From: Obrimoposthia wandeli
Taxonomy: Eukaryota
Assembly (NCBI GenBank): GCA_977020255.1
Contig: CDROCS010002422.1
Span: forward strand, 124,001 to 188,000
Direction: 5' to 3'
Length of the DNA stretch: 64,000 nucleotides
Part shown: piece after piece, positions 5,055 through 42,676 of the stretch
Layout of the letters: each line of letters starts with the position of its first letter
Position numbering within the stretch: position 1 is the stretch's first letter
Program-made: the position numbers and the translations under genes
Notes under the pieces: model-generated
The model's input: the letters and a program-made list of their open reading frames with translations, nothing else
What the model was told of the DNA's origin: nothing
Databases searched by the model: none

Positions 5055-5335
5055 CTTTTAACCAACAAAAGAGACAATTAGCACTTGAGATCACTAGATT
5101 AACCATATGCTCAGCCATATATTCGAACACTGGCTCTTTTTATGCGCTTATATTTTTAACACAAGCTCGGATTTTCAAGCATTAAATTGAGCACTCACTA
5201 TTTTTTTAGCACACTAATGAGGGGTTTTCCCTTATAAACCAGCCAAAACTACCTCTTTAGTTGTTGAATAATAAGGATTAAATAATTATTTTAAATTAAC
5301 TATTGACCAATTACTAAACAACTGGCTAATATATA

Positions 5336-5351
5336 TTGACCACTTGGTAAA
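5336..5351. promoter_or_regulatory. RutR/PydR-type operator upstream of the F420 operon
   Basis: TTGACCACTTGGTAAA has one mismatch to the RutR consensus TTGACCAnnTGGTCAA. It overlaps a putative -35 (TTGACC-N18-TAAAGT). A weaker copy, TTGACCAATTACTAAA, is at 5303-5318. Confidence 0.7.
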
Positions 5352-5425
5352 ACTTTTAGTAAAGTTAACGACCAATTGATCGCAATACACAACTATTAAA
5401 AAAATAACATTGTTGGATAGGTAAC

Positions 5426-6553
5426 ATGCTTACAAAAACACAAGCAGCCACACTACAAAGTGTGAGCGGTGATGAGTTACAAGCGCTGTGTGCAAACGCC
5501 AGTGAAGTACGTGAACAGCACTGGGGCAAAACAGTCACTTACTCGCGTAAGGTCTTTGTGCCTCTCACAAATATGTGCCGCGATACTTGTAGCTATTGTA
5601 CTTTTGTAAAACATCCCGATTCGCCGCAGTCATATATCATGACCCCTCAACAGGTGATGGATGTCGTAAATGACGGGCAAAAGATTGGCTGTAAAGAAGT
5701 GTTATTTAGCTTGGGAGAAAAACCTGAGCAGCGCTACCCACAAGTGCAAGCAAGCCTGACTAAAATGGGTTTTCTAAGCATGACAGACTATTTAGAAGAT
5801 ACCTGTCAAAAAGTAATCGAACAAAGCAGTATGCTACCTCATGTTAATGCCGGCACCTTGTCTCTAGAAGAAATACGCCGTTTAAAGCCCGTCAGTGCCA
5901 GTATGGGGATGATGTTAGAAACCGTTTCCAAACGCTTATTACTCAAGGGTAATGTACATTATGCCTGCCCTGATAAAGTACCTTTACAAAGACTGCGCAC
6001 ATTAGAGCGCGCAGGTCAGTTAGATGTGCCTTTCACGACAGGTATTTTAATTGGCATCGGTGAAACTTGGCTTGAAAGAGTTGAAAGCTTAATTGCCATC
6101 AATGAGATCCACCAGCAATACGGCCATATTCAAGAAGTGATAGTGCAAAACTTTTGCGCCAAAGAAGGCACTGCTATGGCGGGTGCTGCAGAGCCTGATT
6201 TAGATGACATGTTGCGCACGATTGCCGTCGCCAGATTAATTTTAGACCCTTCTATCAGCTTGCAAGCACCGCCAAATTTACAAGAGCGCTTTCACGCATA
6301 CTTAAACAGCGGTATCAATGACTTCGGCGGTATTTCACCCCTGACGATTGATCATATAAACCCTGAAAAAGCTTGGCCACAAATTTCACAACTGGCCAAA
6401 GCGAGTAACGATTGTGGTTATCAATTACAAGAACGCTTAGCGGTTTACCCCAAATATCAGCAATTCCCAGAACGCTATTTTGCCCAACAGATCGCTAGCA
6501 GAGTTCAAAGCATTGCCAGAGTAGATGGTTTAGCAAATCGACAGTGTTTGTAG
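5426..6553 (+). CDS. cofG: FO synthase subunit CofG (7,8-didemethyl-8-hydroxy-5-deazariboflavin synthase)
   Basis: Motifs VTYSRKVFVPLTNMCRDTCSYC (radical SAM CxxxCxxC), LPHVNAG, FTTGILIGIGE and GINDFGGISP. Confidence 0.95.
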   Translation: MLTKTQAATLQSVSGDELQALCANASEVREQHWGKTVTYSRKVFVPLTNMCRDTCSYCTFVKHPDSPQSYIMTPQQVMDVVNDGQKIGCKEVLFSLGEKPEQRYPQVQASLTKMGFLSMTDYLEDTCQKVIEQSSMLPHVNAGTLSLEEIRRLKPVSASMGMMLETVSKRLLLKGNVHYACPDKVPLQRLRTLERAGQLDVPFTTGILIGIGETWLERVESLIAINEIHQQYGHIQEVIVQNFCAKEGTAMAGAAEPDLDDMLRTIAVARLILDPSISLQAPPNLQERFHAYLNSGINDFGGISPLTIDHINPEKAWPQISQLAKASNDCGYQLQERLAVYPKYQQFPERYFAQQIASRVQSIARVDGLANRQCL

Positions 6554-6594
6554 ATTGTAGCTCCTAGCTTACAAACACCGCCACTACTTCGAAA

Positions 6595-7878
6595 ATGCAC
6601 AGTACAAGGAATAATATTTTGAATGCTCTAAACAACTTTCAAAAAAGCACCACTCAACTTAATGAAGCAGTCATTAATAGCTCAGTTCCTGCAGAGTTAG
6701 ATCTATCTAATATCAGTAGTGTGGTTGCTAACATATTAACTCGCGCCCTTAGCGGTGAAGAAATTAGTGCACAAGAAGGCACGCAGCTTTTTCAAAGTAC
6801 TGGCCAAGAGATCACCGCCATCGCCAAATGCGCCGATATTATTCGCCAGCGAACGGTTGGCAACCAAGCCAGCTTTGTCATTACCCGCAACATCAACTTC
6901 ACCAACATTTGTTATATGGGGTGTAAGTTCTGCGGTTTTTCAAAGAGTAAAAACGATCCAGATGCCGAGCTGCTTTCGATGCAAGAAATAGCGCAGCGCG
7001 CACAAGAAGCTTGGGATAGAGGCGCAACTGAAGTGTGTATTCAAGGCGGCATACATCCTGATTTGCCCGAAGATCACTACCGCAATATTTTAATCGCGAT
7101 TAAGCAACAAGTGCCTGATATGCATATTCACGCATTCTCTCCGTTTGAGATATTTTTTGGCGCACAAAATAGTAACATGAGCTATCGTGAGTTTATTCAA
7201 GACTTAATGGATCACGGCCTAGGTTCAATGCCGGGTACTGCCGCTGAAATTCTAGATGTAGAAATTCGCAAACAGCTCACCCGCGATAAGCTAACCACAC
7301 AGCAGTGGGTTGATATTATATCGACTGCACACCAATTGGGCTTGCCTACTACTGCCACCATTATGTACGGCCATATTGATTCACCTCATCACTGGGCTGC
7401 ACACATTGAGCTGCTGCGCAATATGCAAAAAGAGCACGGGGGTTTTACCGAATTTGTACCGCTAGGTTTTGTGCATTATGAATCACCTTTATATACCGAT
7501 CGCAAGAAACTCAAACTCGATGTGCGTCCAGGGCCCACCGCTAACGAAAACATTTTAATGCATGCCGTTTCTAGAATTATGCTCAGTGGATGGATAGATA
7601 ACATTCAAGCATCTTGGGTGAAATTAGGGCCTAACTATGCGGTACAAATGTTACGTGCAGGTGCTAATGATTTAGGTGGCACTTTAATGGATGAATCGAT
7701 AACGCGCTCATCAGGCGGCGTACACGGCGAAGAAATACTGCCCTTAGATATGGTGCAAATGATTGAAAAAAGCGGCTTAACGCCTTTTAGACGCAATACT
7801 CTATACGCACAATTAGAGCACTTCCCGCAAACGCAACAAGCTACACTTATCGCCTCTTGCGGCGGTGCTATTGCATGA
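6595..7878 (+). CDS. cofH: FO synthase subunit CofH
   Basis: Motifs RNINFTNICYMGCKFC, EVCIQGGIHP, SMPGTAAEIL, NIQASWVKLG and GANDLGGTLMDE. The exact start is uncertain. Confidence 0.95.
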   Translation: MHSTRNNILNALNNFQKSTTQLNEAVINSSVPAELDLSNISSVVANILTRALSGEEISAQEGTQLFQSTGQEITAIAKCADIIRQRTVGNQASFVITRNINFTNICYMGCKFCGFSKSKNDPDAELLSMQEIAQRAQEAWDRGATEVCIQGGIHPDLPEDHYRNILIAIKQQVPDMHIHAFSPFEIFFGAQNSNMSYREFIQDLMDHGLGSMPGTAAEILDVEIRKQLTRDKLTTQQWVDIISTAHQLGLPTTATIMYGHIDSPHHWAAHIELLRNMQKEHGGFTEFVPLGFVHYESPLYTDRKKLKLDVRPGPTANENILMHAVSRIMLSGWIDNIQASWVKLGPNYAVQMLRAGANDLGGTLMDESITRSSGGVHGEEILPLDMVQMIEKSGLTPFRRNTLYAQLEHFPQTQQATLIASCGGAIA

Positions 7879-8870
7879 GCCTATCAATACTACTGTTAGC
7901 AGGCGGTGTGGGCGGTGCAAAAATGGCCGAGGGGCTAATGCACAGTGATCACGCCCAAGGCTTAAGTATTTTGGGTAACATCAGCGATGATCAAGAAATT
8001 CATGGCTTGTGGGTATCACCCGATATCGACACTTTGACTTACACTTTAACTGATCGCATTGATACTGATAAAGGCTGGGGCTTAAAAGATGAGAGCAACC
8101 GTACTTTAGATGCACTAAAACTGCTGGGTGAAGATACTTGGATGTATTTAGGCGACCAAGATTTTGCCACCCATATCTACCGCACTCAGTTGCGTAAAAA
8201 AGGGCTGCGCCCCAGTATTATTGCCGCCGATATAGCTGCAAAATTTGGCTTAAAAACGCCTTTACTACTCCCTACTGATGACATCGTACAAACCCGTGTA
8301 AATACTGATCTAGGATGGCTAGATTTTCAAAGTTATTTTGTGCGCTATCAATGCCAGCCTGAAATTAGCGAAATTGCCTTTAAAGGCGCTGATACTGCTA
8401 AAGCCACACCAGAGGCACTGGCTGCAATCAGTGCTGCTGATGTCATTATCTTTGCCCCATCTAACCCTATTGTAAGCATAGGCGCCATTTTGGCGGTGCC
8501 GGGCATTCGCACAGCCATTGAAACGAGTAAGGCTTATAAAATGGCGGTTTCTGGGATTGTGGCCGGAAAAACAGTAAAAGGGCCTGCTGATAAAATGCTG
8601 CGCGCTTTAAATATTCCCTGTAACGCTTTAGGCGTAGCACAATGTTATCAAGATTTAATTGATGTGCTAGTGGTTGATAACTTAGATAACGCGCTTTGCC
8701 CCGCGATTGAAGCTTTAGGTATGGCCACTTACTGCACCGATACCATGATGCTTGATCGCTCAGATAAAGTGCGCTTAGCCAATCAACTAATTGCTTTTCA
8801 GCAAACGGCGGCTAACGACAGCCTTTGTACTGATATCTCTTCAACTAACAGCGAGCAGCCATCACTATGA
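7875..8870 (+). CDS. cofD: 2-phospho-L-lactate/phosphoenolpyruvate transferase CofD (FbiA)
   Basis: Motifs LAGGVGGAK, VSPDIDTLTYTL, LGDQDFATH and PSNPIVSIG. Start at 7875 through an ATGA overlap with the cofH stop. Confidence 0.95.
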   Translation: MSLSILLLAGGVGGAKMAEGLMHSDHAQGLSILGNISDDQEIHGLWVSPDIDTLTYTLTDRIDTDKGWGLKDESNRTLDALKLLGEDTWMYLGDQDFATHIYRTQLRKKGLRPSIIAADIAAKFGLKTPLLLPTDDIVQTRVNTDLGWLDFQSYFVRYQCQPEISEIAFKGADTAKATPEALAAISAADVIIFAPSNPIVSIGAILAVPGIRTAIETSKAYKMAVSGIVAGKTVKGPADKMLRALNIPCNALGVAQCYQDLIDVLVVDNLDNALCPAIEALGMATYCTDTMMLDRSDKVRLANQLIAFQQTAANDSLCTDISSTNSEQPSL

Positions 8871-9505
8871 GTTTGTGCATCGTTATTCCGATGAAAGATC
8901 CGCAGTGTTCCAAGCAACGTTTAAGTGATGTGCTTGATCCACATGAAAGGCAAAACATTGCGCTTAATTTGTTACATAAAACTCTACATTTTTTAACCCA
9001 GCACTTTCCACAGATCAGCGTATTAATCGTTACGCCAGCGCCTGTTATTGCAAAAATTGCTGAACAGTACAAAGTGAATGTATTGATAGAACAATGCGCT
9101 AAAGGCTTAAATAACGCGATTGCACAAGCCGCTCAACACTGTGAAACACTTGGTTTTACCAGCCAGCTAGTGTTACCGGCCGATATCATCGATTTAGATT
9201 ATGCTGAGTTTAATCAATTGCTGAATATGAAAAGAGCTCACCAGTCAGTGATTATCTGCCCCGCGGAAGATGGCGGTACTAATGCGCTGTTAACCACCCC
9301 ACCGCAAGCTATTGAATTTAGTTATGGTGTAAATTCTAGCTCTAAGCATTGGCGTAATGCACAACAAAACAATCTTCACTGCCAACTGCTCACATTGCCA
9401 AACTTAGCCTTAGATTTAGATACCGCACAAGATTTACAACTACTCAATGCAGATGTCATTAATCAACTCACACATAACAACAATCACTATCAGCTCCAAC
9501 GGTAG
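8867..9505 (+). CDS. cofC: 2-phospho-L-lactate/PEP guanylyltransferase CofC (FbiD)
   Basis: Motifs VIPMK..KQRL, GLNNA, LPADI, DGGTNAL and LDLDTAQDL. ATGA overlap with cofD. Confidence 0.92.
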   Translation: MSLCIVIPMKDPQCSKQRLSDVLDPHERQNIALNLLHKTLHFLTQHFPQISVLIVTPAPVIAKIAEQYKVNVLIEQCAKGLNNAIAQAAQHCETLGFTSQLVLPADIIDLDYAEFNQLLNMKRAHQSVIICPAEDGGTNALLTTPPQAIEFSYGVNSSSKHWRNAQQNNLHCQLLTLPNLALDLDTAQDLQLLNADVINQLTHNNNHYQLQR

Positions 9506-9555
9506 CCTTTTAAAAAATAAAGAGCTGATATGAATGATTCAAAGAGGAAATTTAA

Positions 9556-10335
9556 GTGAGTAACCAAGCAGTACAAATTATGGCCGTGACCGGAATCCCC
9601 GACATCGTACCAGGGGATGATTTAGCCACACAAATTAACCAAGCCATGCAAGCACAACAATTATCACTAGAAGATGGCGACATCCTCGTTATTGCTCACA
9701 AAGTTGTCTCTAAAGCGGAGGGACAAATTGTTAACTTGGCCGATGTAGAGCCTTCTTTAGAAGCATTAGAGCTGGCTGAGAAACTAAATAAAGATCCTGC
9801 GAAAGTTGAAACTGTATTAAGAGAATCATCACGCATTGTTAAAACCAGTAAGCGCGAAGATCAAAATGAAGGGCTGATTATTGCACAACATCGCTTAGGC
9901 TTCATCTGCGCAAATGCCGCGGTTGATGAGTCAAACGTTGATCAGCCAAATCACGTTATTTTACTGCCAAAAGATCCTGATAAGAGCGCGCGTGAAATAT
10001 GCGCGGCTTTGGAGAAAATAAGCGCTAAAAAACTCGGTGTGGTAATCACCGACACCTTTGGCAGACCTTGGCGCATGGGCCTTGTAAACGTTGCTATTGG
10101 TTTAGCTAACGTGCCGAGCAAAGTAGATATGGCCGGTCAAAATGACGCTTATGGTCGTGAACTCAAAGTAACAGTGCCAGCCCTGGCTGATGAACTCGCT
10201 GCTGCCAGTGGCTTATTAATGAGTAAAGAAGGAAAGAAGCCAGTCATTTTATTTAGAGGCGTTGATTGGAGCCGCACATCCAGCAGCGCACAAGACTTAA
10301 TTCGCCCAGCGCGCGAAGATTTATTCAGACTATAA
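9556..10335 (+). CDS. cofE: Coenzyme F420-0:L-glutamate ligase CofE, without a nitroreductase domain
   Basis: Motifs GIPDIVPGDDL, AHKVVSKAEG, ANAAVDESN, ITDTFGRPWRMG and ADELAAA. GTG start with AGAGGA RBS; 259 aa. Confidence 0.95.
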   Translation: MSNQAVQIMAVTGIPDIVPGDDLATQINQAMQAQQLSLEDGDILVIAHKVVSKAEGQIVNLADVEPSLEALELAEKLNKDPAKVETVLRESSRIVKTSKREDQNEGLIIAQHRLGFICANAAVDESNVDQPNHVILLPKDPDKSAREICAALEKISAKKLGVVITDTFGRPWRMGLVNVAIGLANVPSKVDMAGQNDAYGRELKVTVPALADELAAASGLLMSKEGKKPVILFRGVDWSRTSSSAQDLIRPAREDLFRL

Positions 10336-10434
10336 GTTAAAAAGTTAGAACATTTAATACATGTAACTCGTAATTTCTTTACAAACTACATCAACCTTGT
10401 GCTGCATTTGAGCACTAAAAAAGGAAAAACAATA

Positions 10435-11118
10435 ATGAAAATAGCTATTCTTGGTGGAACGGGACCGCAAGGTAAAGGATTAGCATTACGCTTTGCCATG
10501 GCCGGCGTTGATGTTGTATTAGGCTCTAGAGATAGCGGTCGCGCCACTGAAATTGCCGCTGAACTCAACGGACAAATTGCAGCGCTCGATAGCGTCAGCA
10601 TGGCGGGTAATATTTCAGGGGCTGATAATAACCAAGCTGTCATTAGTGCTGATCAAATGGTCATTTTAGCTGTACCTTACTCTGCGCATAATGCCACTTT
10701 AACGGCTATTAAAGGCGATCTTAGCGGCAAGATTTTAATTGATATAGTTGTGCCATTAAAAGATGGAGACCCTAAAGCGGTCGATATGCCTATTGAAGGC
10801 TCCGCCACTGAAGCGGCGCAAGCACTACTGGGACCAGATATCCCGGTGGTTGGTGCACTGCACAATGTTTCAGCGACAACGCTCAATCAACTAGCACAAA
10901 AAATTAACTGTGACATCTTAATATGTGGCAATAATTTAGAAGCTAAAAACCAAGTAATTGGCTTGGTTGAGTTGTTACAAGTACAAGCTTACAACGTTGG
11001 CCCTGCCGTTAATGCACGTTGTGTTGAAGCGATTACGCCCATGTTGATTCGTTTGAATATTTCCAAAAAAGTACCTTTCACTCATGCGGGCATCAAGATT
11101 TGCCCGCCTGAACATTAG
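10435..11118 (+). CDS. npdG: NADPH-dependent F420 reductase (F420H2:NADP+ oxidoreductase, Fno)
   Basis: Motifs [38 protein letters not shown] and [14 protein letters not shown] at 10435 follows an AAGGA RBS. Confidence 0.93.
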
Positions 11119-11248
11119 AATTATTTGATCAGCTAAGAAGAACAACAGATATAACGATGAATTTTGTCTCGGAGCTTTCGGCTGATCTTACAGATCAGTT
11201 CGATGTCTCCTCACTATAAAAAAAAGAGAGTTATCTCAGGAGTTAACT

Positions 11249-12253
11249 ATGGATTTTGGTATTACGTTTAAAGGCTTTGTTGAACCACAAAGAGCGAGAA
11301 ATTTAGTTAGACAAGCAGAAGAAGCTGGATTCACCCACTGCTGGTTCTACGATTCACACGTACTGTGGCGCGAGTGCTACCCTGCTATTGCTATGTGCAT
11401 GGAACACACCACTAAAATGAAGTTCGGCCCTTGTGTTACTAACCCTAACTCTCGTGATTGGTCAATTGCAGCAAGTCTTTTTGGTAGCTTAGCAAAACAG
11501 AGTAATGGTCGTTTTGTGGTAGGTTTAGGCCGCGGCGATAGCGCGATGCGTGTAATGGGCAAAAAGCCTGCTAACTTAGCGCGAGTAGCTGAGTTCACAC
11601 AAAAAGTTAAAGCCATGGTACGTGGTGAAGAAGTAACTTACGGCGAAAGCCCTGAGCCGGTTAAATTCCCTTGGGCTGATGGTTATGAACTACCAGTACA
11701 CATCGGCGCATACGGACCTAAAGCACTTAAAACGGCTGGGGAAGTTGGCGATGGTGTTATTTTACAAATTGCCGATCCTTCATTAGTTAAATGGTTTGCT
11801 GAGCAAGCAATCTCTGCGGGCAAAGAAGCGGGGCGTGATATGTCTAACTTCCAAGTTATTGCCTCAGCACCTGCTTACATGGGCGATATGGATAAATGTC
11901 GTGAGGCTACTCGTTGGTTCCCTGCGATGGTGGGTAACCACGTTGCTGATATCGTTGAAAAATACGGAGCACACTCCGGCCTAGTGCCTGAAAGTTTGAC
12001 TAACTACATTGAGCAACGTAAAGGTTATGACTATTCAAAGCATGGTCAAAGCGACAACCCTTATCTTGATTTCATTACCAATGACATCATTGACAGCTTC
12101 AGTGTTTTAGGTGAGCCAGATGCGCACATTGCTAAAATTAAAGAACTGGAAGCTGTGGGCACTACACAGTTTAATATCTATTTAGACAGTGGTGATGAAG
12201 AGCAAATTATTGCTGACTACGCGAACAAGATCATCCCTGCTTTTACAAAATAA
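11249..12253 (+). CDS. F420-dependent LLM-class oxidoreductase (TIGR03842/CPS_4043-like, Mer-related)
   Basis: Motifs WFYDSHVLWRE, GPCVTNP, GLGRGDSAMRVMG and AYGPKAL..AGEVGDGVILQIADP. AGGAG RBS; sits directly after the F420 genes. The family was assigned by recognition, not by an HMM run. Confidence 0.85.
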   Translation: MDFGITFKGFVEPQRARNLVRQAEEAGFTHCWFYDSHVLWRECYPAIAMCMEHTTKMKFGPCVTNPNSRDWSIAASLFGSLAKQSNGRFVVGLGRGDSAMRVMGKKPANLARVAEFTQKVKAMVRGEEVTYGESPEPVKFPWADGYELPVHIGAYGPKALKTAGEVGDGVILQIADPSLVKWFAEQAISAGKEAGRDMSNFQVIASAPAYMGDMDKCREATRWFPAMVGNHVADIVEKYGAHSGLVPESLTNYIEQRKGYDYSKHGQSDNPYLDFITNDIIDSFSVLGEPDAHIAKIKELEAVGTTQFNIYLDSGDEEQIIADYANKIIPAFTK

Positions 12254-12317
12254 TTGACTCGCACTAACCCCCGGTCAATTAAAACACCGAGGGTTTTGCA
12301 ATAACTGAGCAAAGATT

Positions 12318-13547
12318 ATGCAAAATATAAAAATTAATGAGCAGCGCCTTTGGGACAGCCTCATGCAGATGGGTGAAATTGGCGGCACTGAAAAAGGTGG
12401 TTGCTGTCGTTTAGCGCTCACTGATTTAGATAAGCAAGGCCGTGACTTATTTGTAAAATGGTGCGAAGAAGCAGGCTGTACCGTAAGCGTCGATAAAATG
12501 GGTAACATTTTTGCTCGTCGTGCGGGAACAGATGATAGCCTTCCTCCAGTAGTAATGGGCAGTCACTTAGATACGCAGCCAACAGGCGGCAAGTTTGATG
12601 GCGTTTATGGGGTGCTAAGTGGCCTTGAAGTTATACGCTCACTTAACGATCATAACATCCAAACTAAACACCCTATTGAAGCTTCAGTATGGACCAACGA
12701 AGAGGGATCTCGCTTCCCACCTGCCATGGTTGCCTCTGGTGTTTTCGCCGGCGTCTTCGATTTAGAATATGGTTTATCACGTGCCGACTTAGACGGTAAA
12801 ACCATGGGCGAAGAACTCAAACGCATCGGTTATGACGGCGCATTAGAGATGGGTAACCGTGAGTTCAAAGCCTTCTTTGAAGCGCATATTGAACAGGGCC
12901 CTATTTTAGAGAACGAAGAAAAGACTATCGGTGTGGTAACAGATGCCCAAGGTCAGCGTTGGTATGAAGTTAAATTTACTGGCCAAGAATCTCATGCAGG
13001 CCCGACTCCTATGGCAACACGTAAAGATGCTTTAGTAGGTGCCGCACGCATGATCGATAAAGTAAACCAAATTGGTTTAGGTAATGCACCATTAGCCTGC
13101 TCTACTGTTGGCTTATTACAAGTATTTCCTAACTCGCGTAATGTTATCCCTGGTGAAGTGTTTTTCACTGTCGATTTCAGACATCCTAATGATGCTGTAC
13201 TGTCTAAAATGGATGCAGAACTTAGAGCTTTTGCCGAGCAAACAGCAACTGAGCTAGGTTTAGAGATGGAATTTGAAGAAATTTGGTATTCACCGCCGGT
13301 TCCTTTCAACAAATCCTGTGTCGATTCCGTGCGTGAAGCGGCAGAAGCTTCAGGCTACTCACATCGCGATATTGTCAGCGGTGCTGGTCACGATGCTTGC
13401 TACATTTCACGTGTAGCACCCACTGCTATGGTGTTTGTTCCTTGTGAAAATGGTATCAGCCACAATGAATCTGAAAATGCAGACCCGGCTGATTTAGCCG
13501 CAGGTTGCGATGTATTGATTCAAGCAGTTTTACTGCAAGCAAACTAG
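12318..13547 (+). CDS. M20 Zn-dependent N-carbamoyl-amino-acid hydrolase / beta-ureidopropionase (PydC/HyuC/AmaB-like)
   Basis: Motifs GSHLDTQPTGGKFDG, WTNEEGSRF, EAHIEQGP, HAGPTPM and SGAGHDA. Confidence 0.9.
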   Translation: MQNIKINEQRLWDSLMQMGEIGGTEKGGCCRLALTDLDKQGRDLFVKWCEEAGCTVSVDKMGNIFARRAGTDDSLPPVVMGSHLDTQPTGGKFDGVYGVLSGLEVIRSLNDHNIQTKHPIEASVWTNEEGSRFPPAMVASGVFAGVFDLEYGLSRADLDGKTMGEELKRIGYDGALEMGNREFKAFFEAHIEQGPILENEEKTIGVVTDAQGQRWYEVKFTGQESHAGPTPMATRKDALVGAARMIDKVNQIGLGNAPLACSTVGLLQVFPNSRNVIPGEVFFTVDFRHPNDAVLSKMDAELRAFAEQTATELGLEMEFEEIWYSPPVPFNKSCVDSVREAAEASGYSHRDIVSGAGHDACYISRVAPTAMVFVPCENGISHNESENADPADLAAGCDVLIQAVLLQAN

Positions 13548-13562
13548 TCTAATAAACAATAT

Positions 13563-13590
13563 GCCTTACATTACTGTAAGGCTATTTTGT
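13563..13590. terminator. Intrinsic terminator ending the F420/LLM/hydrolase transcript
   Basis: gccttaca-ttac-tgtaaggc followed by tattttgt. Confidence 0.6.
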
Positions 13591-13674: not shown

Positions 13675-14775
13675 TTAGTAGCGGCTAACGGTTTTTTTAA
13701 ACTCCAAAGACAACTGATCAAGATAATAGCTGACCTGTTCACTTTCAGCTTCCATAGTGTCTAGATGCTTAGCCAAACCTACTAGGTCATTTTGCTGGCC
13801 ACATTTAATCGCCGCTCTACCTGCGTTATGCACCATTTCATGGGGCTTAGCTATTTTTTTAAACGCTGCAAAGTGACTATACTTTTTCGCGCCATCGCCT
13901 TTTGCATACCAAATCCCCATTCGACACTCACTATGCTTATTAGGTAACTCTGCAAAGTTTTGGCTATCAACTAAGTTATATATATTACTTTTCCAAACGA
14001 CGTGATCTAGTTTTACCGTATCTAAAAAGGCTTTTATAGAGGTAAAATCGATCACTGCTTGCATGTTTTGAGAGCTAGTTAATACTGAATTGACCACTTG
14101 ATCTATCTGCTGTGATGATACAGATACTTCAGCCGCGCTATTCTTGTTTTCTAAAATTGAATCTTTGATGCTCTCAGTTTGCGCTATTACTTGTAGCACT
14201 AGTTTTTCAATACCAGCGCTTGCTTCATACGCTTTTCCTGCCAGTGCACGTACTTCATCCGCTACTACAGAGAACCCTCTACCTGCCTCTCCCGCTCTTG
14301 CTGCTTCTATCGCAGCATTAAGTGCCAATAAGTTAGTCTGATCTGAAATAGATTGAATCGATGAAACCAGATTATTTATAGAGTGTACTGAACTGTTAAG
14401 CACACTCACTGACTCTTCGCTGTCATCCGCTAAGCGATTTATATCGCTCGCTCTGGTTGCCAATCTAGCGAGCGCTTCTCGTGTTTGCATAAAGATTTCA
14501 TCTAGCTGATGCAATTTTTCCTGCTCAATAACTAAATCTTCAGCGCTTTCACTTAAACCATTACGAATGCTATTGAGCATTGCACTGCCTTTTAATTGGC
14601 TAGAGAAAATGGTTGATTGTTCGTGTAATGCGTTTTTTTGTTGCGTTAACTCATCAACTTCGTTTTTCCATTGGTGGTTTAAAAGCGCCACATCTTCGCT
14701 ATGCTTATTACGTTCATCTATTAGCTGCTGTTTTAATGACTCAATTTCTTTATGTGCTTTGCTTTGAAAAAACAT
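13675..14775 (-). CDS. Soluble methyl-accepting chemotaxis protein with a C-terminal CZB zinc-binding domain
   Basis: Signalling core [34 protein letters not shown] ligands in [17 protein letters not shown] and PHEMVH. No transmembrane segment. Confidence 0.92.
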
Positions 14776-30070: not shown

Positions 30071-31561
30071 TTATGAAGGGAACGCGAACTGTGCACCTTC
30101 ACGAACACCCGCTGAAGGCCAGCGCTGGGTAATCGTTTTACGCTTTGTGTAAAAACGTACTGAATCAGGGCCATACGCAGCTAGATCACCAAACAATGAA
30201 CGCTTCCATCCACCAAAGCTGTGGTATGAAACAGGTACTGGTAACGGTACGTTAATGCCTACCATGCCTACCTTAATGTTATCACTGAAGTAACGTGCAG
30301 CTTCGCCATCACGGGTAAAGATACAAGTACCGTTACCGTATTCGTGGCTATCAATTAGCTCCATTGCTTCTTGCATTGTGTTAACACGTACCACAACCAA
30401 TACAGGGCCAAAGATTTCTTCTTTATAGCTAACCATTTCAGGGGTGACATTATCAATCAATGTACCACCAACGAAGTAGCCATTAGCATAACCTTCAACT
30501 TGTGGGTTACGACCGTCAACAATAATTTTAGCACCATCGTTTTCAGCGCCAGTGATGTAGCCATTCACTTTTTCTTTGTGTGCTTTAGTGATAACAGGAC
30601 CGAAATCGTTTGAACTATCGCTGAAAGCACCCACTTTTAGATCAGCCATGCCAGCCGTTATCTTCTCTATTAATAAATCAGCCGCTTGATCGCCTACTGC
30701 AACAACACAAGAAAGTGCCATGCAACGCTCGCCTGATGAACCAAAAGCTGCACCTATTAATGCTTGTGCTGCGTTATCCATATCAGCATCTGGCATGATG
30801 ATCGCGTGGTTCTTAGCGCCGCCTAGTGCTTGGCAACGCTTGCCGTGTGCACTCGCGGTTGTGTAAATGTATTCCGCAATTGGAGTTGAACCTACAAAAC
30901 TTACCGCCATTACATCTGGGTTTGTTAGTAGTGTATCTACTGCTACTTTATCGCCGTTAACTACGTTCATTACGCCCGCGGGTAAACCTGCGTCTAATAA
31001 AAGCTGTGCGATAAACATAGTAGATGAAGGATCACGCTCAGATGGCTTCAAGATGAAAGTGTTACCACAAACGATTGCCATTGGGTACATCCATAAAGGA
31101 ACCATCGCAGGGAAGTTAAAAGGTGTTATACCTGCAACTACGCCTAATGGCTGGAACTCACTCCATGAATCGATATTTGGACCCGTATTTTTACTGTGCT
31201 CGCCTTTTAGTAATTCTGGTGCGTAGCAAGCGTATTCAACGTTTTCTATACCACGTTGTAGCTCACCCATTGCATCGTGAGAAATTTTACCGTGTTCTTC
31301 ACCAATTAATTCGCAGATCTTGTCAGCATTTTCTTCTAGTAACTGCTTAAACTTAAACATTACTCGAGCACGCTTAGCAACAGGTGTATTGCGCCATGCA
31401 GGGAAAGCTGCTTGTGCTGCTGCAATCGCTTGCTCAACTGTTTCTTGACTAGCTAATGCAACTTGTTTGCTTACCTCACCAGTTGATGGGTTAAATACAT
31501 CTTGAGAACGGCCGCTGTCACTGACATCCAAACCGTTAATCATGTGTCCTAAAGTGTTCAT
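30071..31561 (-). CDS. mmsA: CoA-acylating (methyl)malonate-semialdehyde dehydrogenase (BauC/IolA-like)
   Basis: Motifs GITPFNFPAMVP, LKPSERDP, ALGGAKNH, FGSSGERCMA and EEIFGPV. Start ATG 31561 has a GAGG RBS. Confidence 0.95.
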   Translation of the reverse strand: MNTLGHMINGLDVSDSGRSQDVFNPSTGEVSKQVALASQETVEQAIAAAQAAFPAWRNTPVAKRARVMFKFKQLLEENADKICELIGEEHGKISHDAMGELQRGIENVEYACYAPELLKGEHSKNTGPNIDSWSEFQPLGVVAGITPFNFPAMVPLWMYPMAIVCGNTFILKPSERDPSSTMFIAQLLLDAGLPAGVMNVVNGDKVAVDTLLTNPDVMAVSFVGSTPIAEYIYTTASAHGKRCQALGGAKNHAIIMPDADMDNAAQALIGAAFGSSGERCMALSCVVAVGDQAADLLIEKITAGMADLKVGAFSDSSNDFGPVITKAHKEKVNGYITGAENDGAKIIVDGRNPQVEGYANGYFVGGTLIDNVTPEMVSYKEEIFGPVLVVVRVNTMQEAMELIDSHEYGNGTCIFTRDGEAARYFSDNIKVGMVGINVPLPVPVSYHSFGGWKRSLFGDLAAYGPDSVRFYTKRKTITQRWPSAGVREGAQFAFPS

Positions 31562-31857
31562 GTTAAACCTCATGTTTCTTTAAAGCTTATAATAGCTTCA
31601 TTAATTGGGTAAGCTTTGTAGCGTTCCTGTACAAGATAGCTATACAAGACCTACAAACAAGCTTATTAACTATACTACCGATGAGCACACCTTCAATCTC
31701 TGCGGTGAAAAGCGCTATCAATATCGGTAATTCATGTTCTTAAATGACTAGTTTTATAATAGTAAATACCAGCCAAGTATAAATTAACAGCTCAAAACAA
31801 CCAATAAATTCTAAATTTAAAAAATAGAACATTTGATTTATTTTGAGTTTGTTTAGT

Positions 31858-33201
31858 CTACTTTAACTCTCTTATAGACTCGCCTATAGCATTAATAACG
31901 TTATCTATCTCTTCACGCTCAACAATAAACGGCAAGCCTAATTGGATAGTATCACCGCCATAGCGCACGTAATAACCTTTTTCCCAACACTTCATCGCTA
32001 TTTCATAAGGTCTTCTTGCAGGCTCTCCTGGATACGATTCTATCTGTAACGCTCCAGCTAAGCCATAATTACGAATATCCGTAATATACTCTGTGCCTTT
32101 TAAGCTATGAAGCGCATTTTCAAAGATTGGGCTCATTTGCTTTACACGTGGCACAAGTTGCTCATTCTTCAGTATATCTAAAGAAGCTAACGCTGCTGCA
32201 CAGGCAACAGGGTGACCTGAATAAGTGTAGCCATGTGGTAATTCAATAGCGCCTTCAGGACCTGAGTTATCCATAAAGGTTTGGTAAATTTCAGAACTTG
32301 CTATCACCGCACCCATAGGTACAGCACCGTTAGTTAACTGCTTAGCAACATTCAATAAATCAGGGGTTACACCGAATTCTTCTGCGCCAGTGTTGGAACC
32401 CATACGGCCAAAACCGGTAATGACTTCATCAAAAATCAATAAAATGCTGTGTTGATCACAGATTTCACGTAAACGCTTTAGGTAGCCAACAGGTGGCGGT
32501 ATAACCCCTGCAGAACCCGCTAACGGCTCAATAATGACCGCTGCAATGTTTGACGCATCGTGCAGTGCGATAAGTTCAAGTAGCTCATCCGCTTTATCCG
32601 CGCCTGTTTCAGGCATACCGCGTGTAAAAGCATTTTCTTTAAGAAGAGTGTGCGGCAAGTGATCACAATCGACCCCCTGTCCGTACAAAGTACGGTTAGC
32701 ACCGATGCCACCTAAGCTAAACCCACCAAAGTTAACTCCGTGGTAACCTTTAGAGCGCCCTATTAGCTTGGTTTTAGTGGCCATACCTTTCTTGCGCCAA
32801 TACGCTCTGGCAATTTTTAGCGAAGTATCAGCCGCTTCCGAGCCTGAATCGGTGTAGAACACATAATCCAGTCCTTTTGGCATTAATTCCTTAATACGAT
32901 TAGCTAATTCAAATGCCTGTGGGTGCGCATATTGAAAAGCCGGTGCGTAATCTAACTGGCGTAATTGTTTAGAGACAGCATCCGCTATTTCAACTCTGCT
33001 GTGCCCTGCTCCACAAGTCCAAAGCCCTGACAAACCGTCAAAAACTTTACGGCCAGTTGAATCTGTCAAGTAACTGCCTTGACCTTCAACAATGATGCGC
33101 GGATCCGCTTTAAATTGACGGTTAGCCGTATATGGCATCCAGTAAGCTTCCATCTCTTGACGAGACATTCCAGCAGATTTTTGTAAATCGAATTCAGACA
33201 T
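31858..33201 (-). CDS. bauA: Beta-alanine:pyruvate (omega-amino acid) aminotransferase, class III PLP
   Basis: Motifs YWMPYTANRQFK, DGLSGLWTCGAGH, FDEVITGFGR, AKQLTNG and HGYTYSGHP. Start ATG 33201 has a GAGGA RBS. Confidence 0.9.
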   Translation of the reverse strand: MSEFDLQKSAGMSRQEMEAYWMPYTANRQFKADPRIIVEGQGSYLTDSTGRKVFDGLSGLWTCGAGHSRVEIADAVSKQLRQLDYAPAFQYAHPQAFELANRIKELMPKGLDYVFYTDSGSEAADTSLKIARAYWRKKGMATKTKLIGRSKGYHGVNFGGFSLGGIGANRTLYGQGVDCDHLPHTLLKENAFTRGMPETGADKADELLELIALHDASNIAAVIIEPLAGSAGVIPPPVGYLKRLREICDQHSILLIFDEVITGFGRMGSNTGAEEFGVTPDLLNVAKQLTNGAVPMGAVIASSEIYQTFMDNSGPEGAIELPHGYTYSGHPVACAAALASLDILKNEQLVPRVKQMSPIFENALHSLKGTEYITDIRNYGLAGALQIESYPGEPARRPYEIAMKCWEKGYYVRYGGDTIQLGLPFIVEREEIDNVINAIGESIRELK

Positions 33202-33441
33202 GGTGTTCCTCACATCGCTAATTATTGATCGTTGTTTGCAGTTTGCACTTAATTTTACTAACAAAAAATATAAAATTACTTATATTCAGATAACCATTTA
33301 CTAACCTAAAGAGTCACTTTATTATATTTACTACTTTGTGTGAAACAAGGGTTTTAGTAAAACCACTCGATGCATGAAAGTAAGTTATAAATATTCTGGA
33401 CGAGCATTACTTGTAACCTCTGAAAAATTAAGGAATCTGTC

Positions 33442-34383
33442 ATGGCTAAGGTAACCACAGCACGCCAAAAAGGCTTATCAGGGCGCTTAGCTGATACCGA
33501 TATCCGTTTGCTTAAAATTTTTAAAGCCGTCGTTGAGTGCGGTGGTTTCACTACAGCCGAGGTTGAATTAAATATCTCACGCGCTGCCATTAGCATCGCA
33601 ATGAGCGATTTAGAACACCGCTTATCGCTAAAGCTTTGCCAGCGCGGCCGAAGTGGTTTCTCTATGACCGATCAAGGCACTGAAGTGTATCAAGCGACTT
33701 TGCAACTGTTTTCAGCGCTTGAAAATTTTCGCACCCAAGTTAACAGCATTCACCAACAGCTCAAAGGGGAGCTCAACATTGGTATCACTGATACGCTCGT
33801 CACTATGCCTAAAATGAGAATTACTAAGGCCTTGAGTAATTTAAAGCAGCGCGGTCCTGAAGTTAAAATCAACATTCGTATGGTCCCACCTGGTGAAATT
33901 GAGATGGCGGTGCTCGATGGAAAATTACATACAGGCGTTATACCTGTCTCCAAGAAACTGCCCGGTTTAGAATATCTCTCTTTGTACAACGAAGAATCCC
34001 AGCTTTACTGCTCAGACACCCACCCCTTGTTCACTTTATTTGATAGCGAACTGAGTGTGAGCTTAATCGAAGAACACGAAGCTGTACTGCCTGCATATGC
34101 ACAATCCGCCAGTATTAAAGCGCTTTTCCAGCGTCTTCAAGGTACCGCGACAGCCACTGATAGGGAAGGCATCGCTTTTTTGATTCTTACAGGTCACTAC
34201 ATTGGTTACCTGCCAACCCATTTTGCGCAGCGGTGGGCTCTACAAGGTAAACTGCGTGCTTTACTGCCCAAGCAACTCAATTTTAAAACACCTATTGCTG
34301 CTATCAGCCGCAAGGGGGCTGCATCTAACTTAGTCCTTAACTGCTACTTGCAACAGCTAGAGAGCACTGATATATCTACATAA
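33442..34383 (+). CDS. LysR regulator divergent from bauA (BauR-like)
   Basis: HTH DIRLLKIFKAVVECGGFTTAEVELNISRAAIS. Same divergent arrangement as Pseudomonas bauR/bauA. Confidence 0.88.
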   Translation: MAKVTTARQKGLSGRLADTDIRLLKIFKAVVECGGFTTAEVELNISRAAISIAMSDLEHRLSLKLCQRGRSGFSMTDQGTEVYQATLQLFSALENFRTQVNSIHQQLKGELNIGITDTLVTMPKMRITKALSNLKQRGPEVKINIRMVPPGEIEMAVLDGKLHTGVIPVSKKLPGLEYLSLYNEESQLYCSDTHPLFTLFDSELSVSLIEEHEAVLPAYAQSASIKALFQRLQGTATATDREGIAFLILTGHYIGYLPTHFAQRWALQGKLRALLPKQLNFKTPIAAISRKGAASNLVLNCYLQQLESTDIST

Positions 34384-34504
34384 TTTTTTTGGTAAAAAAA
34401 CCTATATTTTCATAAAGAAACTCTTTCTCTGTCATTGTGCTAAATATAGGCTGATCAAATTTTTTACATATTTTGCTTGCGATCTGTTTTTTTCCATCAT
34501 AATA

Positions 34505-34520
34505 TTTACCGAATGGTAAA
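34505..34520. promoter_or_regulatory. RutR/PydR-type operator upstream of the nitrilase-NCS1-hydA operon
   Basis: TTTACCGAATGGTAAA, a perfect TTTACC-N4-GGTAAA palindrome, immediately after a putative TTGCGA-N17-TAATAT promoter. Confidence 0.62.
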
Positions 34521-34921
34521 AAATAATTCTAACAACTTACTCACTACAATTTACGCTCATATAAGATTGATCAGAGCCGTTTCTTGTAGATAGGGGAATG
34601 CTTAATGCACGCATACCAAAGCAGTTTTATATATCTTTTCGTTACACAAAAGTTACTGATGAGTTTTCAAAGAGCTCTTCTACGCATTCAATTTCTTTCG
34701 TTACAATTATTTTTTCACTACACCTTGTTTAATAAAAAAATAAAATTCTATCACTTAAATCTTCCTGTAAAAGCGATGTCAGCCACATCACGTTCGACAC
34801 TTGTGTACTAAAATTCGGTTTAGACTGAGGGATTTCAGCGCTCAAGCGCAGCTTTCACTCATCTATACAACCGCACTTTTTATAGCGCTGTCGACACCAG
34901 GATTTAATCAGAGGCAAAGTA

Positions 34922-35794
34922 ATGAATAAACTCAAATGCGGCTTGATACAAATGTCACTCAAGGGCAGTACCAGCGAATCAACTGATTCTATTAGAGATA
35001 AAATGATTGACGCACATATTCCTCTTATTCAGGAAGCTGCAGATCAAGGGGTCCAAGTACTTTGCTTCCAAGAAGTTTTCACCACGCCGTATTTTTGCCC
35101 AAGCCAAGATAAGAAATGGTATGCAAGTGCTGAGAAAATTCCTGGCGGCCACACAGTCACTTTAATGCAAGAGCAAGCAAAGAAGCACAATATGGTCATT
35201 GTGGTACCTATCTATGAAGAGGATTTACCTGGCGTCTTTTACAATACCGCTGCGGTAATTGATGCCGATGGAAGCTACTTAGGTAAATATCGCAAATCAC
35301 ATATTCCCGATACAGCACCTGGCTTTTGGGAGAAGCTTTACTTCAAACCCGGTAATACAGGCTATCCCGTCTTTGATACCAAGTACTGTAAGTTAGGGGT
35401 TTATATTTGCTATGACCGCCATTTCCCTGAAGGCTGGCGCGCACTGGCACTCAATGGCGCTGAATATATTGTTAACCCCTCTGCTACTGTAATGGGTAAA
35501 AGTAAGTATTTATGGGAGCTCGAACAACCAGCCTCTGCCGCGGCTAACGGCGTATTTATCGGCGCGATAAACCGTGTAGGTAGAGAACAACCTTGGGATA
35601 CTCAAATGGGTGAATTCTATGGCTCTAGCTATATCGTGAACCCCTTGGGCCAAATTGAGGCACAAGCTAGTGCCGATCAAGATGAGTTGTTAGTGCACCA
35701 AATCGATTTAGATATGATCAAAGAAGTACGTACAGGCTGGCAGTTCTTTCGTGATCGCCGCCCAGAAACTTATGACGATTTAACCCGTCCTTAA
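34922..35794 (+). CDS. Nitrilase-fold beta-ureidopropionase (N-carbamoyl-beta-alanine amidohydrolase)-like hydrolase
   Basis: Triad in CFQEVF, YRKSHIP and ICYDRHFPEGWR; also FFRDRRPE. First gene of an operon with NCS1 and hydA. Confidence 0.85.
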   Translation: MNKLKCGLIQMSLKGSTSESTDSIRDKMIDAHIPLIQEAADQGVQVLCFQEVFTTPYFCPSQDKKWYASAEKIPGGHTVTLMQEQAKKHNMVIVVPIYEEDLPGVFYNTAAVIDADGSYLGKYRKSHIPDTAPGFWEKLYFKPGNTGYPVFDTKYCKLGVYICYDRHFPEGWRALALNGAEYIVNPSATVMGKSKYLWELEQPASAAANGVFIGAINRVGREQPWDTQMGEFYGSSYIVNPLGQIEAQASADQDELLVHQIDLDMIKEVRTGWQFFRDRRPETYDDLTRP

Positions 35795-35893
35795 CCATTT
35801 TTAAGAGATACGCTCATGATTTGGCGTATTTCTTTTTTAATTCTAATGTTCAGCAAAATATAAAAAAACCATAATAATTAAAAGGTATTAATA

Positions 35894-37366: not shown

Positions 37367-37430
37367 GTAGTGCTATTACGCTGAAAGGGCTCGCTCTTTC
37401 AGCAACTTTCTTGAAATTTAGTGAATCTAA

Positions 37431-38885
<1,455 letters not shown>

Positions 38886-38983: not shown

Positions 38984-39427
38984 ATGATCTGGTTTAGTAT
39001 GCTGCTCGTCTTTATTGCGGGTGCTATGCTGCCGATGCAAGCAGGTGTCAATTCACAATTAGCGCGCCATGGCAGTGGTGCACTATGGGCGGCTGGCGTA
39101 TCTTTTCTTATCGGCACACTCACACTGCTAACCATTTTTGTATTAGTCAGACAGCCTTGGCCGGTGCTCGCTCAGCTAAAAGTGGCGCCTATGTGGTCTT
39201 GGACAGGTGGCTTTATGGGCGCTTTTTTTGTGTCTTGTATGGCTTTTTTCGCCCCAAAATTAGGCGCAGCAACACTTTTAGCATTAATTATTGCAGGACA
39301 GATGAGCGCTTCTATACTTTTAGATCACCAAGGCTGGCTCGGTTTTAATGTACAACACATTAGCTTAGGCCGCATTGCTGGTTTAGCTTGCATTGCATTA
39401 GGGATTGTATTGGTTAAGAAGTTTTGA
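38984..39427 (+). CDS. DMT family transporter (YdcZ/DUF606-like)
   Basis: Motifs LPMQAGVNSQL, WSWTGGFMGA and GQMSASILLDH. Confidence 0.88.
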   Translation: MIWFSMLLVFIAGAMLPMQAGVNSQLARHGSGALWAAGVSFLIGTLTLLTIFVLVRQPWPVLAQLKVAPMWSWTGGFMGAFFVSCMAFFAPKLGAATLLALIIAGQMSASILLDHQGWLGFNVQHISLGRIAGLACIALGIVLVKKF

Positions 39428-40827: not shown

Positions 40828-40888
40828 TTAAAGGCCTTTTACAAAAAGGATCATAATATCATTCACCTTTCACAGACAAAGTTATAAT

Positions 40889-41027
40889 GAGACCTTTGCA
40901 CAATTACTGCACTCAGTGATACGGCGTTAAAAACAAGCTCAAAATCCTCATTTATAGGCATAAACTCCGGTTTTTCGCTTGTTTTTGCCTTGTCTCACTG
41001 TCGCTCGCTACTTTGTGCAAAGGTCTC
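40889..41027 (+). mobile_element. MITE family B, copy B2 (139 bp)
   Basis: Identical to B1, with a 15-bp TIR and a 5-bp TSD ataat. Confidence 0.93.
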
Positions 41028-41069
41028 ATAATAAGTTTTATTGATATTTATTATAATAAAATAGCATAT

Positions 41070-41102
41070 TCAATTAATAAATCAACATGATTTATTAATT
41101 GA
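41070..41102. promoter_or_regulatory. Putative FrcR operator overlapping the -35 of the frcB promoter
   Basis: 15-bp perfect arms tcaattaataaatca-aca-tgatttattaattga, overlapping TTGACA-N17-TAATTT. Confidence 0.7.
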
Positions 41103-41357
41103 CAAAATAGTGATCAACAGGTAATTTCTACTATGTGTATATAAAATAGCCAGCGAAAATACCAATCAATATAAGTGGATACTGCTGTGCTATTTCACTT
41201 ATCTACAAGGTAATAATAGTTAGAAAGCGGCAGATATACTCAACAACTTAGCTATTGCTAAACGATAAATTCTCATTAAACAAAGGCATGGAAGCTCTTA
41301 ATACGTCCAGCTCTTTACATGTCTACAAACTTGAATTTTAACCATGTGGGGAATACG

Positions 41358-42380: not shown

Positions 42381-42423
42381 ACTGTAATACATAACAAGTA
42401 TTTGTCAGAAACACTTGCGGACA

Positions 42424-42610: not shown

Positions 42611-42676
42611 CTAATATTCCATTAGGTTTTATTATCTGCTGTTCTATACTTTTACTGGCATTTAATTAGTATTACT

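Follow-up and report, generated by a model that had tools for sequence, protein, structure and literature searches.

The first step of reductive uracil and thymine catabolism is classically the task of PreT/PreA (also named PydX/PydA). Enzymes of this PreTA/dihydropyrimidine dehydrogenase (DPD) type hold FAD, FMN and four [4Fe-4S] clusters, wired within one complex. F420H2-dependent members of the luciferase-like monooxygenase (LLM) class that reduce electron-poor C=C or C=N bonds next to a carbonyl, amide or ring are known, among them the dehydroalanine reductase LxmJ, Apd6/LmbY and the picrate reductase Fht (PMC8498797). The role of F420 in Proteobacteria was listed as an open question in a 2021 FEMS review, which also recorded that Paracoccus denitrificans yields only trace F420. 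Here we describe an eight-gene operon that joins F420 biosynthesis to an LLM-class oxidoreductase, found in a 64,000-nucleotide stretch of marine bacterial DNA within the assembly filed under Obrimoposthia wandeli (GCA_977020255.1, contig CDROCS010002422.1, positions 124,001 to 188,000; hereafter the window), and a cluster of pyrimidine catabolic genes in the same stretch. We put at about 0.74 the probability that this operon is a self-contained, pyrimidine-inducible module replacing PreTA/PydA in reductive uracil and thymine catabolism. We also lean, less firmly, towards a broader proposal: that marine and soil Proteobacteria and some Actinomycetota and Chloroflexota break down uracil and thymine with a new class of enzyme, a luciferase-like F420H2:pyrimidine reductase that takes its F420H2 from Fno and serves as a metal-free PreTA substitute, and that the whole proteobacterial F420 pathway is a RutR-controlled, pyrimidine-induced accessory to it.

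The F420 operon and its LLM

The operon occupies positions 5426-13547 of the window. Gene calls were judged from profile matches against curated NCBIfam cut-offs, which all eight genes exceed, and all eight lie on the + strand. The two FO synthase radical-SAM subunits are encoded by cofG (5426-6553; TIGR03550, 465 bits against a cut-off of 213) and cofH (6595-7878; TIGR03551, 497 against 374), followed by cofD of the 2-phospho-L-lactate transferase family (7875-8870; TIGR01819, 270 against 257), the guanylyltransferase gene of F420 biosynthesis, cofC (8867-9505; TIGR03552, 165 against 105), and cofE for F420-0:glutamate ligase, a single-domain protein of 259 aa (9556-10335; TIGR01916, 266 against 181). 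The F420 pathway set CofG+CofH, CofC, CofD and CofE is thereby complete. The NADPH-dependent F420 reductase gene npdG, whose product is also called Fno (10399-11118; TIGR01915, 188 against 150), precedes the LLM-class F420-dependent oxidoreductase gene (11249-12253; TIGR03842, 505 against 295), and the last gene encodes an amidase of the M20 hydantoinase/carbamoylase family (12318-13547; NF006769, 684 against 452; TIGR01879, 438 against 204). The probable start of cofD, ATG 7875, overlaps the cofH stop as ATGA (4 nt), the mechanical open reading frame (ORF) beginning at TTG 7857; cofD and cofC also overlap by 4 nt, as read from ORF coordinates, and the remaining gaps measure +41 (cofG/cofH), +50 (cofC/cofE), +63 (cofE/npdG), +130 (npdG/LLM) and +64 nt (LLM/M20). 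The identical eight-gene order recurs in dozens of genomes and is therefore not due to chance.

The initial annotation had read this region as eight co-oriented, tightly packed genes running to one terminator with a single F420-using catabolic enzyme among them. The profile scores and junctions agree with this, as does a terminator-like hairpin followed by a T-run at the operon end (13563-13582, + strand), and family scans of nearly all ORFs of at least 120 aa over the 64-kb window, and of at least 80 aa in its first 22 kb, found no further F420-family protein. The proposed family of the LLM likewise held: the TIGR03842 match spans residues 2-332 of 334 at 504.7 bits against a cut-off of 295.45. 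TIGR03842 (CPS_4043) is a hypothetical-equivalog family with thousands of database members, and no structure has been solved for any of them.

An AlphaFold (AF2) model of the LLM built from a 94-sequence alignment reached a pLDDT of 92.3, a single-sequence model (pLDDT 42) being set aside. The top 18 Foldseek matches in the PDB are all F420-dependent LLMs, Mer first, then Adf, FGD2 and FGD1, and FMN luciferases and monooxygenases rank only after them. At the sequence level, the beta3 loop that holds the non-prolyl cis-peptide behind F420 in Mer (GPGVT) is kept in the family as GP(C/L)VTNP, and Asp97 aligns with Mer Asp96. The 69 TIGR03842 sequences of the alignment share six invariant residues, His37, Arg69, His231, Tyr260, Tyr262 and His265, all candidates for pyrimidine binding and protonation. 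By conservation, the candidate donors of the C5 proton are His37, Asp97, His231, Tyr260, Tyr262 and His265. A 545-aa protein (P0353) carries both PF00296 and PF03807 in its precomputed Pfam annotation and is an apparent LLM-Fno fusion.

Two features of the operon stand apart from its gene order. CofE lacks an FbiB-type C-terminal nitroreductase domain, and the operon holds no dehydro-F420 reductase gene. The npdG-LLM gap (11119-11248, 130 nt) is the longest of the operon and contains a short hairpin, GCTGATCT-TACA-GATCAGT, at about 11170-11190, which is without a clear T-run; it may serve in processing or attenuation, or have no role at all.

A reductive pyrimidine pathway without its first enzyme

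About 24 kb downstream of the start of the operon, positions 30071-38885 of the window encode the reductive pyrimidine (Pyd) pathway, of which only the first enzyme is missing. On the - strand lie a CoA-acylating (methyl)malonate-semialdehyde dehydrogenase (MMSDH) gene (30071-31573; TIGR01722, 680 bits against a cut-off of 448.5) and a gene for an AptA-like omega-aminotransferase (31858-33264; NF052567, 715 against 500), which probably acts on beta-alanine and beta-aminoisobutyrate. Divergent from the latter is a LysR-family regulator gene (33442-34383, + strand), followed on the + strand by a gene for a nitrilase-superfamily, beta-ureidopropionase-like hydrolase (PydC; 34922-35794; PF00795, 215 bits), a gene for an NCS1 nucleobase:cation symporter (35894-37366; TIGR00800 as best match, 317 bits, below the cut-off of 353) and the dihydropyrimidinase gene pydB (37437-38885; TIGR02033, 612 against 393). 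The nearest solved entry for the PydC-like hydrolase is 2vhh (deposited as CG3027-PA), which we take to be the fly beta-alanine synthase, and then come the beta-ureidopropionase entries 6ftq and 8pt4, the human enzyme among them. PreT and PreA of E. coli K-12 gave no tblastn match at E<=1e-3 in the 64-kb window. The LysR-AptA-MMSDH unit also flanks the F420 operon itself in 10 related loci.

The best solved match of the M20 amidase is the N-carbamoyl-beta-alanine amidohydrolase 8c46 (490 bits), with L-carbamoylases and yeast beta-alanine synthase also matched, and homologues of 52-77% identity occur in 25 of 53 canonical PreTA clusters, which marks it as a regular pyd gene. It is a probable N-carbamoyl-beta-alanine / beta-ureidoisobutyrate amidohydrolase, that is, a second PydC of the M20 type, and the window thus encodes two ureido-hydrolases, this amidase and the nitrilase-superfamily PydC-like protein.

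The LLM in other genomes

The surroundings of the LLM were compared across 80 loci, taken from one genome per species, with LLMs 74-99% identical and flanks of about 10 kb on each side; ORFs were labelled with the window proteins, the remaining ORFs were clustered, and neighbours were counted within 10 kb. Gammaproteobacterial carriers comprise Oceanospirillaceae, Colwellia, Marinomonas, Halomonas, Vibrio, Amphritea, Halieaceae, Pseudomonas/Halopseudomonas and Marinobacter, and alphaproteobacterial ones Paracoccus denitrificans (L069), Cohaesibacter, Ensifer and Hyphomicrobiales; most carriers are marine, and the LLM is 74-80% identical between the two classes. Depending on the gene, cofGHDCE and Fno share the operon with the LLM in 60-66 of the 80 loci; with the fusion protein, this points indirectly to F420 rather than FMN as the cofactor of the LLM. 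Pyrimidine genes are frequent neighbours: a RutR-like TetR gene stands near the LLM in 62 loci, the M20 amidase in 59, NCS1 in 43, dihydropyrimidinase in 22, MMSDH in 11, AptA in 10, CN-hydrolase in seven, the Tsx channel in six and cytosine deaminase in four. At least one pyrimidine marker was found in 72 of the 80 loci and at least three in 51.

Further accessory genes follow the operon, with the proton-translocating transhydrogenase genes pntAA-pntAB-pntB after M20 in about 20 of the 80 loci and ribA after the LLM in 10. PntAB supplies Fno with NADPH, RibA contributes to the FO precursor and cytosine deaminase yields uracil; the presence of these genes beside the operon makes functional sense. 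The pnt trio stands directly 3' of M20 in L005, L007, L012, L013, L020, L033, L035-L037, L039, L041, L043, L045, L047-L049, L057 and L058, and several pnt loci have a RutR-type box upstream of M20. It looks as though NADPH supply has been drawn into the pyrimidine regulon. Genes of 398 and 468 aa after M20 in Halomonas and Amphritea had been considered as PreA/PreT and were rejected, as they are pntAA/pntAB/pntB. ORF clusters C3, C5, C10, C21, C30 and C31 were set aside because they look like opposite-strand artefacts of ORF calling in GC-rich loci.

In some loci, the LLM is found among pyd genes and away from cof genes. In four Halieaceae or related genomes, PydC and NCS1 genes in one orientation face dihydropyrimidinase, LLM and YdcZ genes in the other, with a RutR gene oriented back towards them and RutR boxes in the divergent promoter; no cof gene lies within 10 kb of the LLM in these four. 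A Thermoleophilia genome encodes dihydropyrimidinase (576 bits), CN-hydrolase and a TIGR03842 LLM (417 bits) in that order, tightly packed, and in Anaerolineaceae contigs an aminotransferase gene diverges from a series of MMSDH, a small ORF, CN-hydrolase, LLM (463 bits) and dihydropyrimidinase (558 bits). The flanks of the Thermoleophilia and Anaerolineaceae operons, taken to about 10 kb on each side, contain no F420 genes, and the LLM is their sole oxidoreductase candidate for the missing first step. In gene order, then, the LLM follows the pyd genes rather than the cofactor genes.

Mutual exclusion with PreT/PreA

The tblastn search with E. coli PreT and PreA (E<=1e-3) covered 1.57 Mb, the 80 LLM loci as well as the window, and yielded no match. 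A second, dihydropyrimidinase-centred scan of metagenome contigs gave 80 additional loci, most of them canonical, with PreT, PreA, NCS1, dihydropyrimidinase, CN-hydrolase or M20 and often a RutR-like gene; none of these 80 held an LLM, Fno or cof gene. When the dihydropyrimidinase-bearing loci of both scans were pooled (n=110), the neighbourhood contained the LLM only in 30, PreT/PreA only in 53, neither in 27 and both in 0. Fisher's test gives p=1.8e-11; as the pooled loci come from two sampling schemes and include related genomes, this value should be read as indicative only. The median distance between PreA and dihydropyrimidinase in the canonical clusters is 2.7 kb. Linkage of the LLM to Pyd genes, exclusion of PreTA and the operators common to both kinds of cluster (see below) together form the pattern expected of non-orthologous gene displacement.

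The initial annotation had proposed that the LLM and NpdG stand in for PreTA, and had named as a check whether TIGR03842 co-occurs with pyrimidine genes and avoids preT/preA. The exclusion just described goes with such avoidance, and co-occurrence with dihydropyrimidinase, NCS1, ureidopropionase, the beta-alanine aminotransferase and a RutR-like regulator extends to three phyla, including operons without cof genes in their flanks. The substitution itself is supported by Pyd context, synteny, exclusion, operators, accessory genes and the fusion protein. We infer the substrate and the reaction direction of the LLM, its reductase step being assigned by gap-filling and synteny.

RutR-type operators

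The E. coli RutR consensus is the palindromic TTGACCAnnTGGTCAA (PMC2475637). Boxes were scored against it. TTGACCA..TGGT motifs are repeated upstream of cofG, where a box with one mismatch, TTGACCACTTGGTAAA (5336-5351, + strand), overlaps a -35-like TTGACC and lies 75 nt 5' of the cofG ATG, while a weak box with three mismatches, TTGACCAATTACTAAA (5303-5318, + strand), overlaps another -35-like TTGACC further upstream. A third, TTTACCGAATGGTAAA (34505-34520, + strand), is a perfect palindrome with three mismatches to the consensus and stands upstream of pydC-NCS1-pydB. The window as a whole contains nine RutR-type matches against 2.6 expected. A further site, TTGACCACTTGATCTA (14090-14105, two mismatches), lies inside a chemoreceptor-like gene (13675-14775) and could be due to chance; RutR binding inside genes is known in E. 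coli (PMC2475637).

The enrichment is much stronger in the related loci. With at most two mismatches allowed, the 80 LLM loci contain 92 boxes where shuffling gave 4.75 +/- 1.8, an enrichment of about 20-fold, and 78 of the 92 are intergenic. By position, 43 lie upstream of cofG/cofH, 16 of M20, six of NCS1 and five of dihydropyrimidinase, the last two counts partly overlapping in shared divergent regions. In 36 of 66 related loci, such boxes stand no more than 450 bp 5' of the first cof gene, and they are also present on the operon promoters of two alphaproteobacterial loci without pyd neighbours in their flanks. In the canonical PreTA set, 31 RutR-type boxes stand against 2.3 expected, and the operator type is thus common to both sets. 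The RutR-like gene adjoining the operon in 62 of the 80 loci is usually directly upstream of cofG. The cof/LLM operon is putatively controlled by RutR.

Proposed pathway

In the pathway that we propose, CofG, CofH, CofC, CofD and CofE would synthesise F420, and Fno would pass hydride from NADPH to F420 as the functional counterpart of PreT. The LLM, as the functional counterpart of PreA/PydA, would use F420H2 as the hydride donor for C6 of uracil or thymine while an acid of the enzyme protonates C5, giving 5,6-dihydrouracil or 5,6-dihydrothymine. Ring opening would fall to dihydropyrimidinase, and the M20 amidase and/or the nitrilase-type beta-ureidopropionase would yield beta-alanine or beta-aminoisobutyrate together with NH3 and CO2. 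The last steps would be those of the aminotransferase and the semialdehyde dehydrogenase. A RutR-type repressor, encoded outside the window and bound to the boxes over the -35 regions, would be released by uracil or thymine, and F420 would be made only during pyrimidine breakdown. That F420 is made for the pyrimidine step only is plausible because the cof promoter carries RutR boxes. The trace F420 of P. denitrificans, itself a carrier of the operon, fits a repressed operon and would be explained by the proposed repression through boxes over the -35 when uracil and thymine are absent. A speculative advantage of the arrangement would be independence from the Fe-S clusters of PreTA in iron-poor seawater, for which the mostly marine range of the carriers is the sole support.

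Alternative explanations

Several points weigh against this pathway. The evidence as a whole is genomic association, and the catalytic acid and the uracil-binding residues of the LLM remain candidates from conservation. The PreT/PreA search of this genome reached the 64-kb window only, which leaves room for a preTA elsewhere, and the exclusion statistic carries the caveat of pooled samples given above. Dihydropyrimidinase was found within 10 kb in only 22 of the 80 LLM loci by ORF labelling, and eight of the 80 had no pyrimidine marker by the same labelling, six of these being full-length or nearly so; among the eight, tblastn later found dihydropyrimidinase in two Paracoccus loci, and two others hold a RutR box. 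There is no RutR gene within the window, and the RutR-like proteins score 197 bits against the NCBI RutR equivalog cut-off of 368, that is, below it. Deeper TIGR03842 branches, moreover, occur in other contexts. The sister subclade P0121/P0272, about 50% identical to the window LLM, is accompanied by a 436-446-aa NtaA/DszA-like LLM, a PCMT-type methyltransferase, isochorismatase or amidases and an HpaB-like oxygenase, which has the look of a separate catabolic cluster, possibly for some other N-heterocycle; P0319 has hydrolases and xanthine-dehydrogenase-like subunits as neighbours, P0318 and P0364 are in F420 clusters only, and the TARA protein P0355 is encoded between an aldehyde dehydrogenase and an M20 gene, in the order aldehyde dehydrogenase, LLM, M20. 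TIGR03842 may hold more than one specificity.

These branches, with their different neighbours, are part of what favours an LLM that serves pyrimidine or ureide catabolism with another substrate or at another step (for example on another RutR-linked N-heterocycle, such as a 5-substituted uracil, a ring derived from cytosine or resembling hydantoin, or a ureide of purine origin, or else in malonic semialdehyde reduction), with the gene for uracil reduction lying elsewhere. It is further favoured by the two ureido-hydrolases of the window, by the several ureides that dihydropyrimidinase and M20 enzymes can use, and by the suggestion that a putative F420 LLM of a Chloroflexota uric-acid cluster, which also has a TIGR02033-type hydantoinase and M20, is a 'yanthine' reductase (PMC12507026). 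We nevertheless hold this explanation to be unlikely, since PydA is all that is missing from the window cluster and from the operons of Halieaceae, Thermoleophilia and Anaerolineaceae, the final enzymes (beta-alanine-type aminotransferase and MMSDH) are specific for uracil and thymine products, and the LLM and PreTA exclude each other beside dihydropyrimidinase; the window showed no genes of the xanthine-dehydrogenase or SsnA type, and the semialdehyde is already served by MMSDH. Replacement of PreTA also accounts better for its absence from 30 of 30 LLM-type neighbourhoods than does a PreTA elsewhere in the genome that carries the main flux, with the F420 module as an accessory or conditional isoenzyme for iron limitation, NADPH use or thymine only. 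PreA would be expected close to dihydropyrimidinase, as in canonical clusters, and we regard this second explanation as improbable, despite the restriction of the search to the window, the marine origin of most carriers and the known PydA variants that differ in reductant (NADH, NADPH or ferredoxin; PMC7332683).

Least probable of all, and to our minds scarcely credible, is a Mer-like or Fgd-like housekeeping F420 enzyme, of one-carbon (C1) metabolism or F420 reduction, with pyrimidine genes nearby by chance. Mer is the nearest characterised relative in sequence and fold, and some alphaproteobacterial and other loci have only cof genes and Fno as informative neighbours. The identification of the LLM as Mer was rejected, however, because both Mer models score below cut-off (TIGR03555, 143 bits against 348.7; NF002619, 146 against 276) and because Thr6 stands at the position of Mer Glu6, a column that reads T/C/A/S/V and never E in the 94 family sequences. 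In Mer, Glu6 is catalytic and lies at the end of beta1, and the E6Q variant retains 0.4% activity (bioRxiv 10.1101/2023.09.18.558202). No tetrahydromethanopterin (H4MPT) genes were seen in the window, three lineages hold the LLM in pyd operons without cof genes in the fetched flanks, and RutR boxes mark the operon promoters, including those of the two alphaproteobacterial loci without pyd neighbours. Pyrimidine reduction by the LLM remains the reading that we prefer.

Other features of the window

The genes on either side are unrelated to the operon: upstream of it lie those for sugar dehydrogenases and a LacI/CytR regulator, and downstream those for chemoreceptors, an Lrp regulator and c-di-GMP enzymes. 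Behind dihydropyrimidinase in the window stands a gene for a YdcZ-type small DMT membrane protein of 147 aa (38984-39427, + strand; PF04657, 133 bits). It is a conserved companion of the pathway: a YdcZ-type gene was counted near the LLM in 13 of the 80 loci, where the homologue lies 3' of the LLM or between NCS1 and dihydropyrimidinase (L028-L031, L039, L047-L049 and others), and the protein might export or import a pathway intermediate. The leader that separates the RutR-type palindrome from the pydC-like start (34521-34921, about 400 nt) is unusually long; no Rfam family was matched in the window, and no known riboswitch in this leader. Just 3' of the pyd cluster, positions 39628-45582 encode a ROK-family regulator, a ribose-type ABC transporter (binding protein, permease and ATPase) and a PRK09270 nucleoside/nucleotide-kinase-family protein, which may form a nucleoside or ribose utilisation unit tied to pyrimidine salvage.

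The nearest genome locus, from an Oceanospirillaceae metagenome-assembled genome (L001), shares only about 90% DNA identity with the window over the operon. In that locus, a RutR-like gene stands about 1.2 kb 5' of cofG, and the roughly 10 kb of chemoreceptor and c-di-GMP genes that part the two pyrimidine clusters in the window are absent. By this comparison, the region is recently rearranged.

Implications

Neither a link between F420 and pyrimidine reduction nor a paper naming TIGR03842 or CPS_4043 was found in the full text of about 8.1 million open papers and bioRxiv, subscription journals lying outside that scope. If the proposal is true, F420 would have its first clear job in Proteobacteria, which would explain why they make it, the classical pathway would gain a non-homologous first enzyme and TIGR03842 would gain a function. 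The role would be an inducible, catabolic one, and cultures would be predicted to begin making F420 in response to uracil or thymine. A whole cofactor pathway would have entered a catabolic regulon and travelled by horizontal transfer, the LLM being 74-80% identical between alpha- and gammaproteobacteria. In practice, it would offer a metal-free uracil and thymine reductase for biocatalysis and better annotation of pyrimidine turnover in marine metagenomes.

Comparison with known systems

The nearest published idea is the Chloroflexota proposal of an F420 LLM for reductive uric-acid degradation (PMC12507026). In that bioinformatic proposal, the putative 'yanthine reductase' would take the place of the PreA/DHODH-like YgfK/UacX and is accompanied by a hydantoinase-type ring opener and M20. 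The Chloroflexota cluster differs in its purine-derived substrate and in XdhD, SsnA, YgeW and YgeX, where the clusters described here have beta-alanine metabolism and RutR boxes. LxmJ, Apd6/LmbY and Fht belong to the same superfamily as the LLM and use F420, the probable cofactor of the LLM too, with F420H2 supplied from NADPH via Fno (PMC8498797). They act in actinobacterial secondary metabolism or xenobiotic degradation, whereas the proposed setting of the LLM is central nucleobase catabolism in Proteobacteria under RutR control.

Among characterised enzymes, Mer (PDB 1z69, 8qpl) is the nearest homologue, with about 27-31% identity, a TM score of 0.77-0.81 and the TIM-barrel LLM fold. Mer Asp96, which Asp97 of the LLM matches, contacts the pyrimidine part of the pterin. 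Unlike Mer, the LLM has no C1/H4MPT context and is found in pyrimidine catabolic operons of aerobic bacteria.

PreT/PreA occupies the same pathway position as that proposed for the LLM with Fno and has the same neighbours (RutR-like gene, NCS1, dihydropyrimidinase, CN-hydrolase or M20, aminotransferase and MMSDH) as well as RutR-type operators. A two-part logic is common to both, in which electrons are taken from nicotinamide by PreT, or here by Fno, and the pyrimidine is reduced by PreA, or here, as we propose, by the LLM. The likeness is one of functional analogy and not of membership, there being no sequence or fold relationship between the two pairs (no tblastn match). In contrast to PreTA, a diffusible deazaflavin would link two metal-free proteins, and the biosynthesis of that cofactor is encoded within the operon itself.

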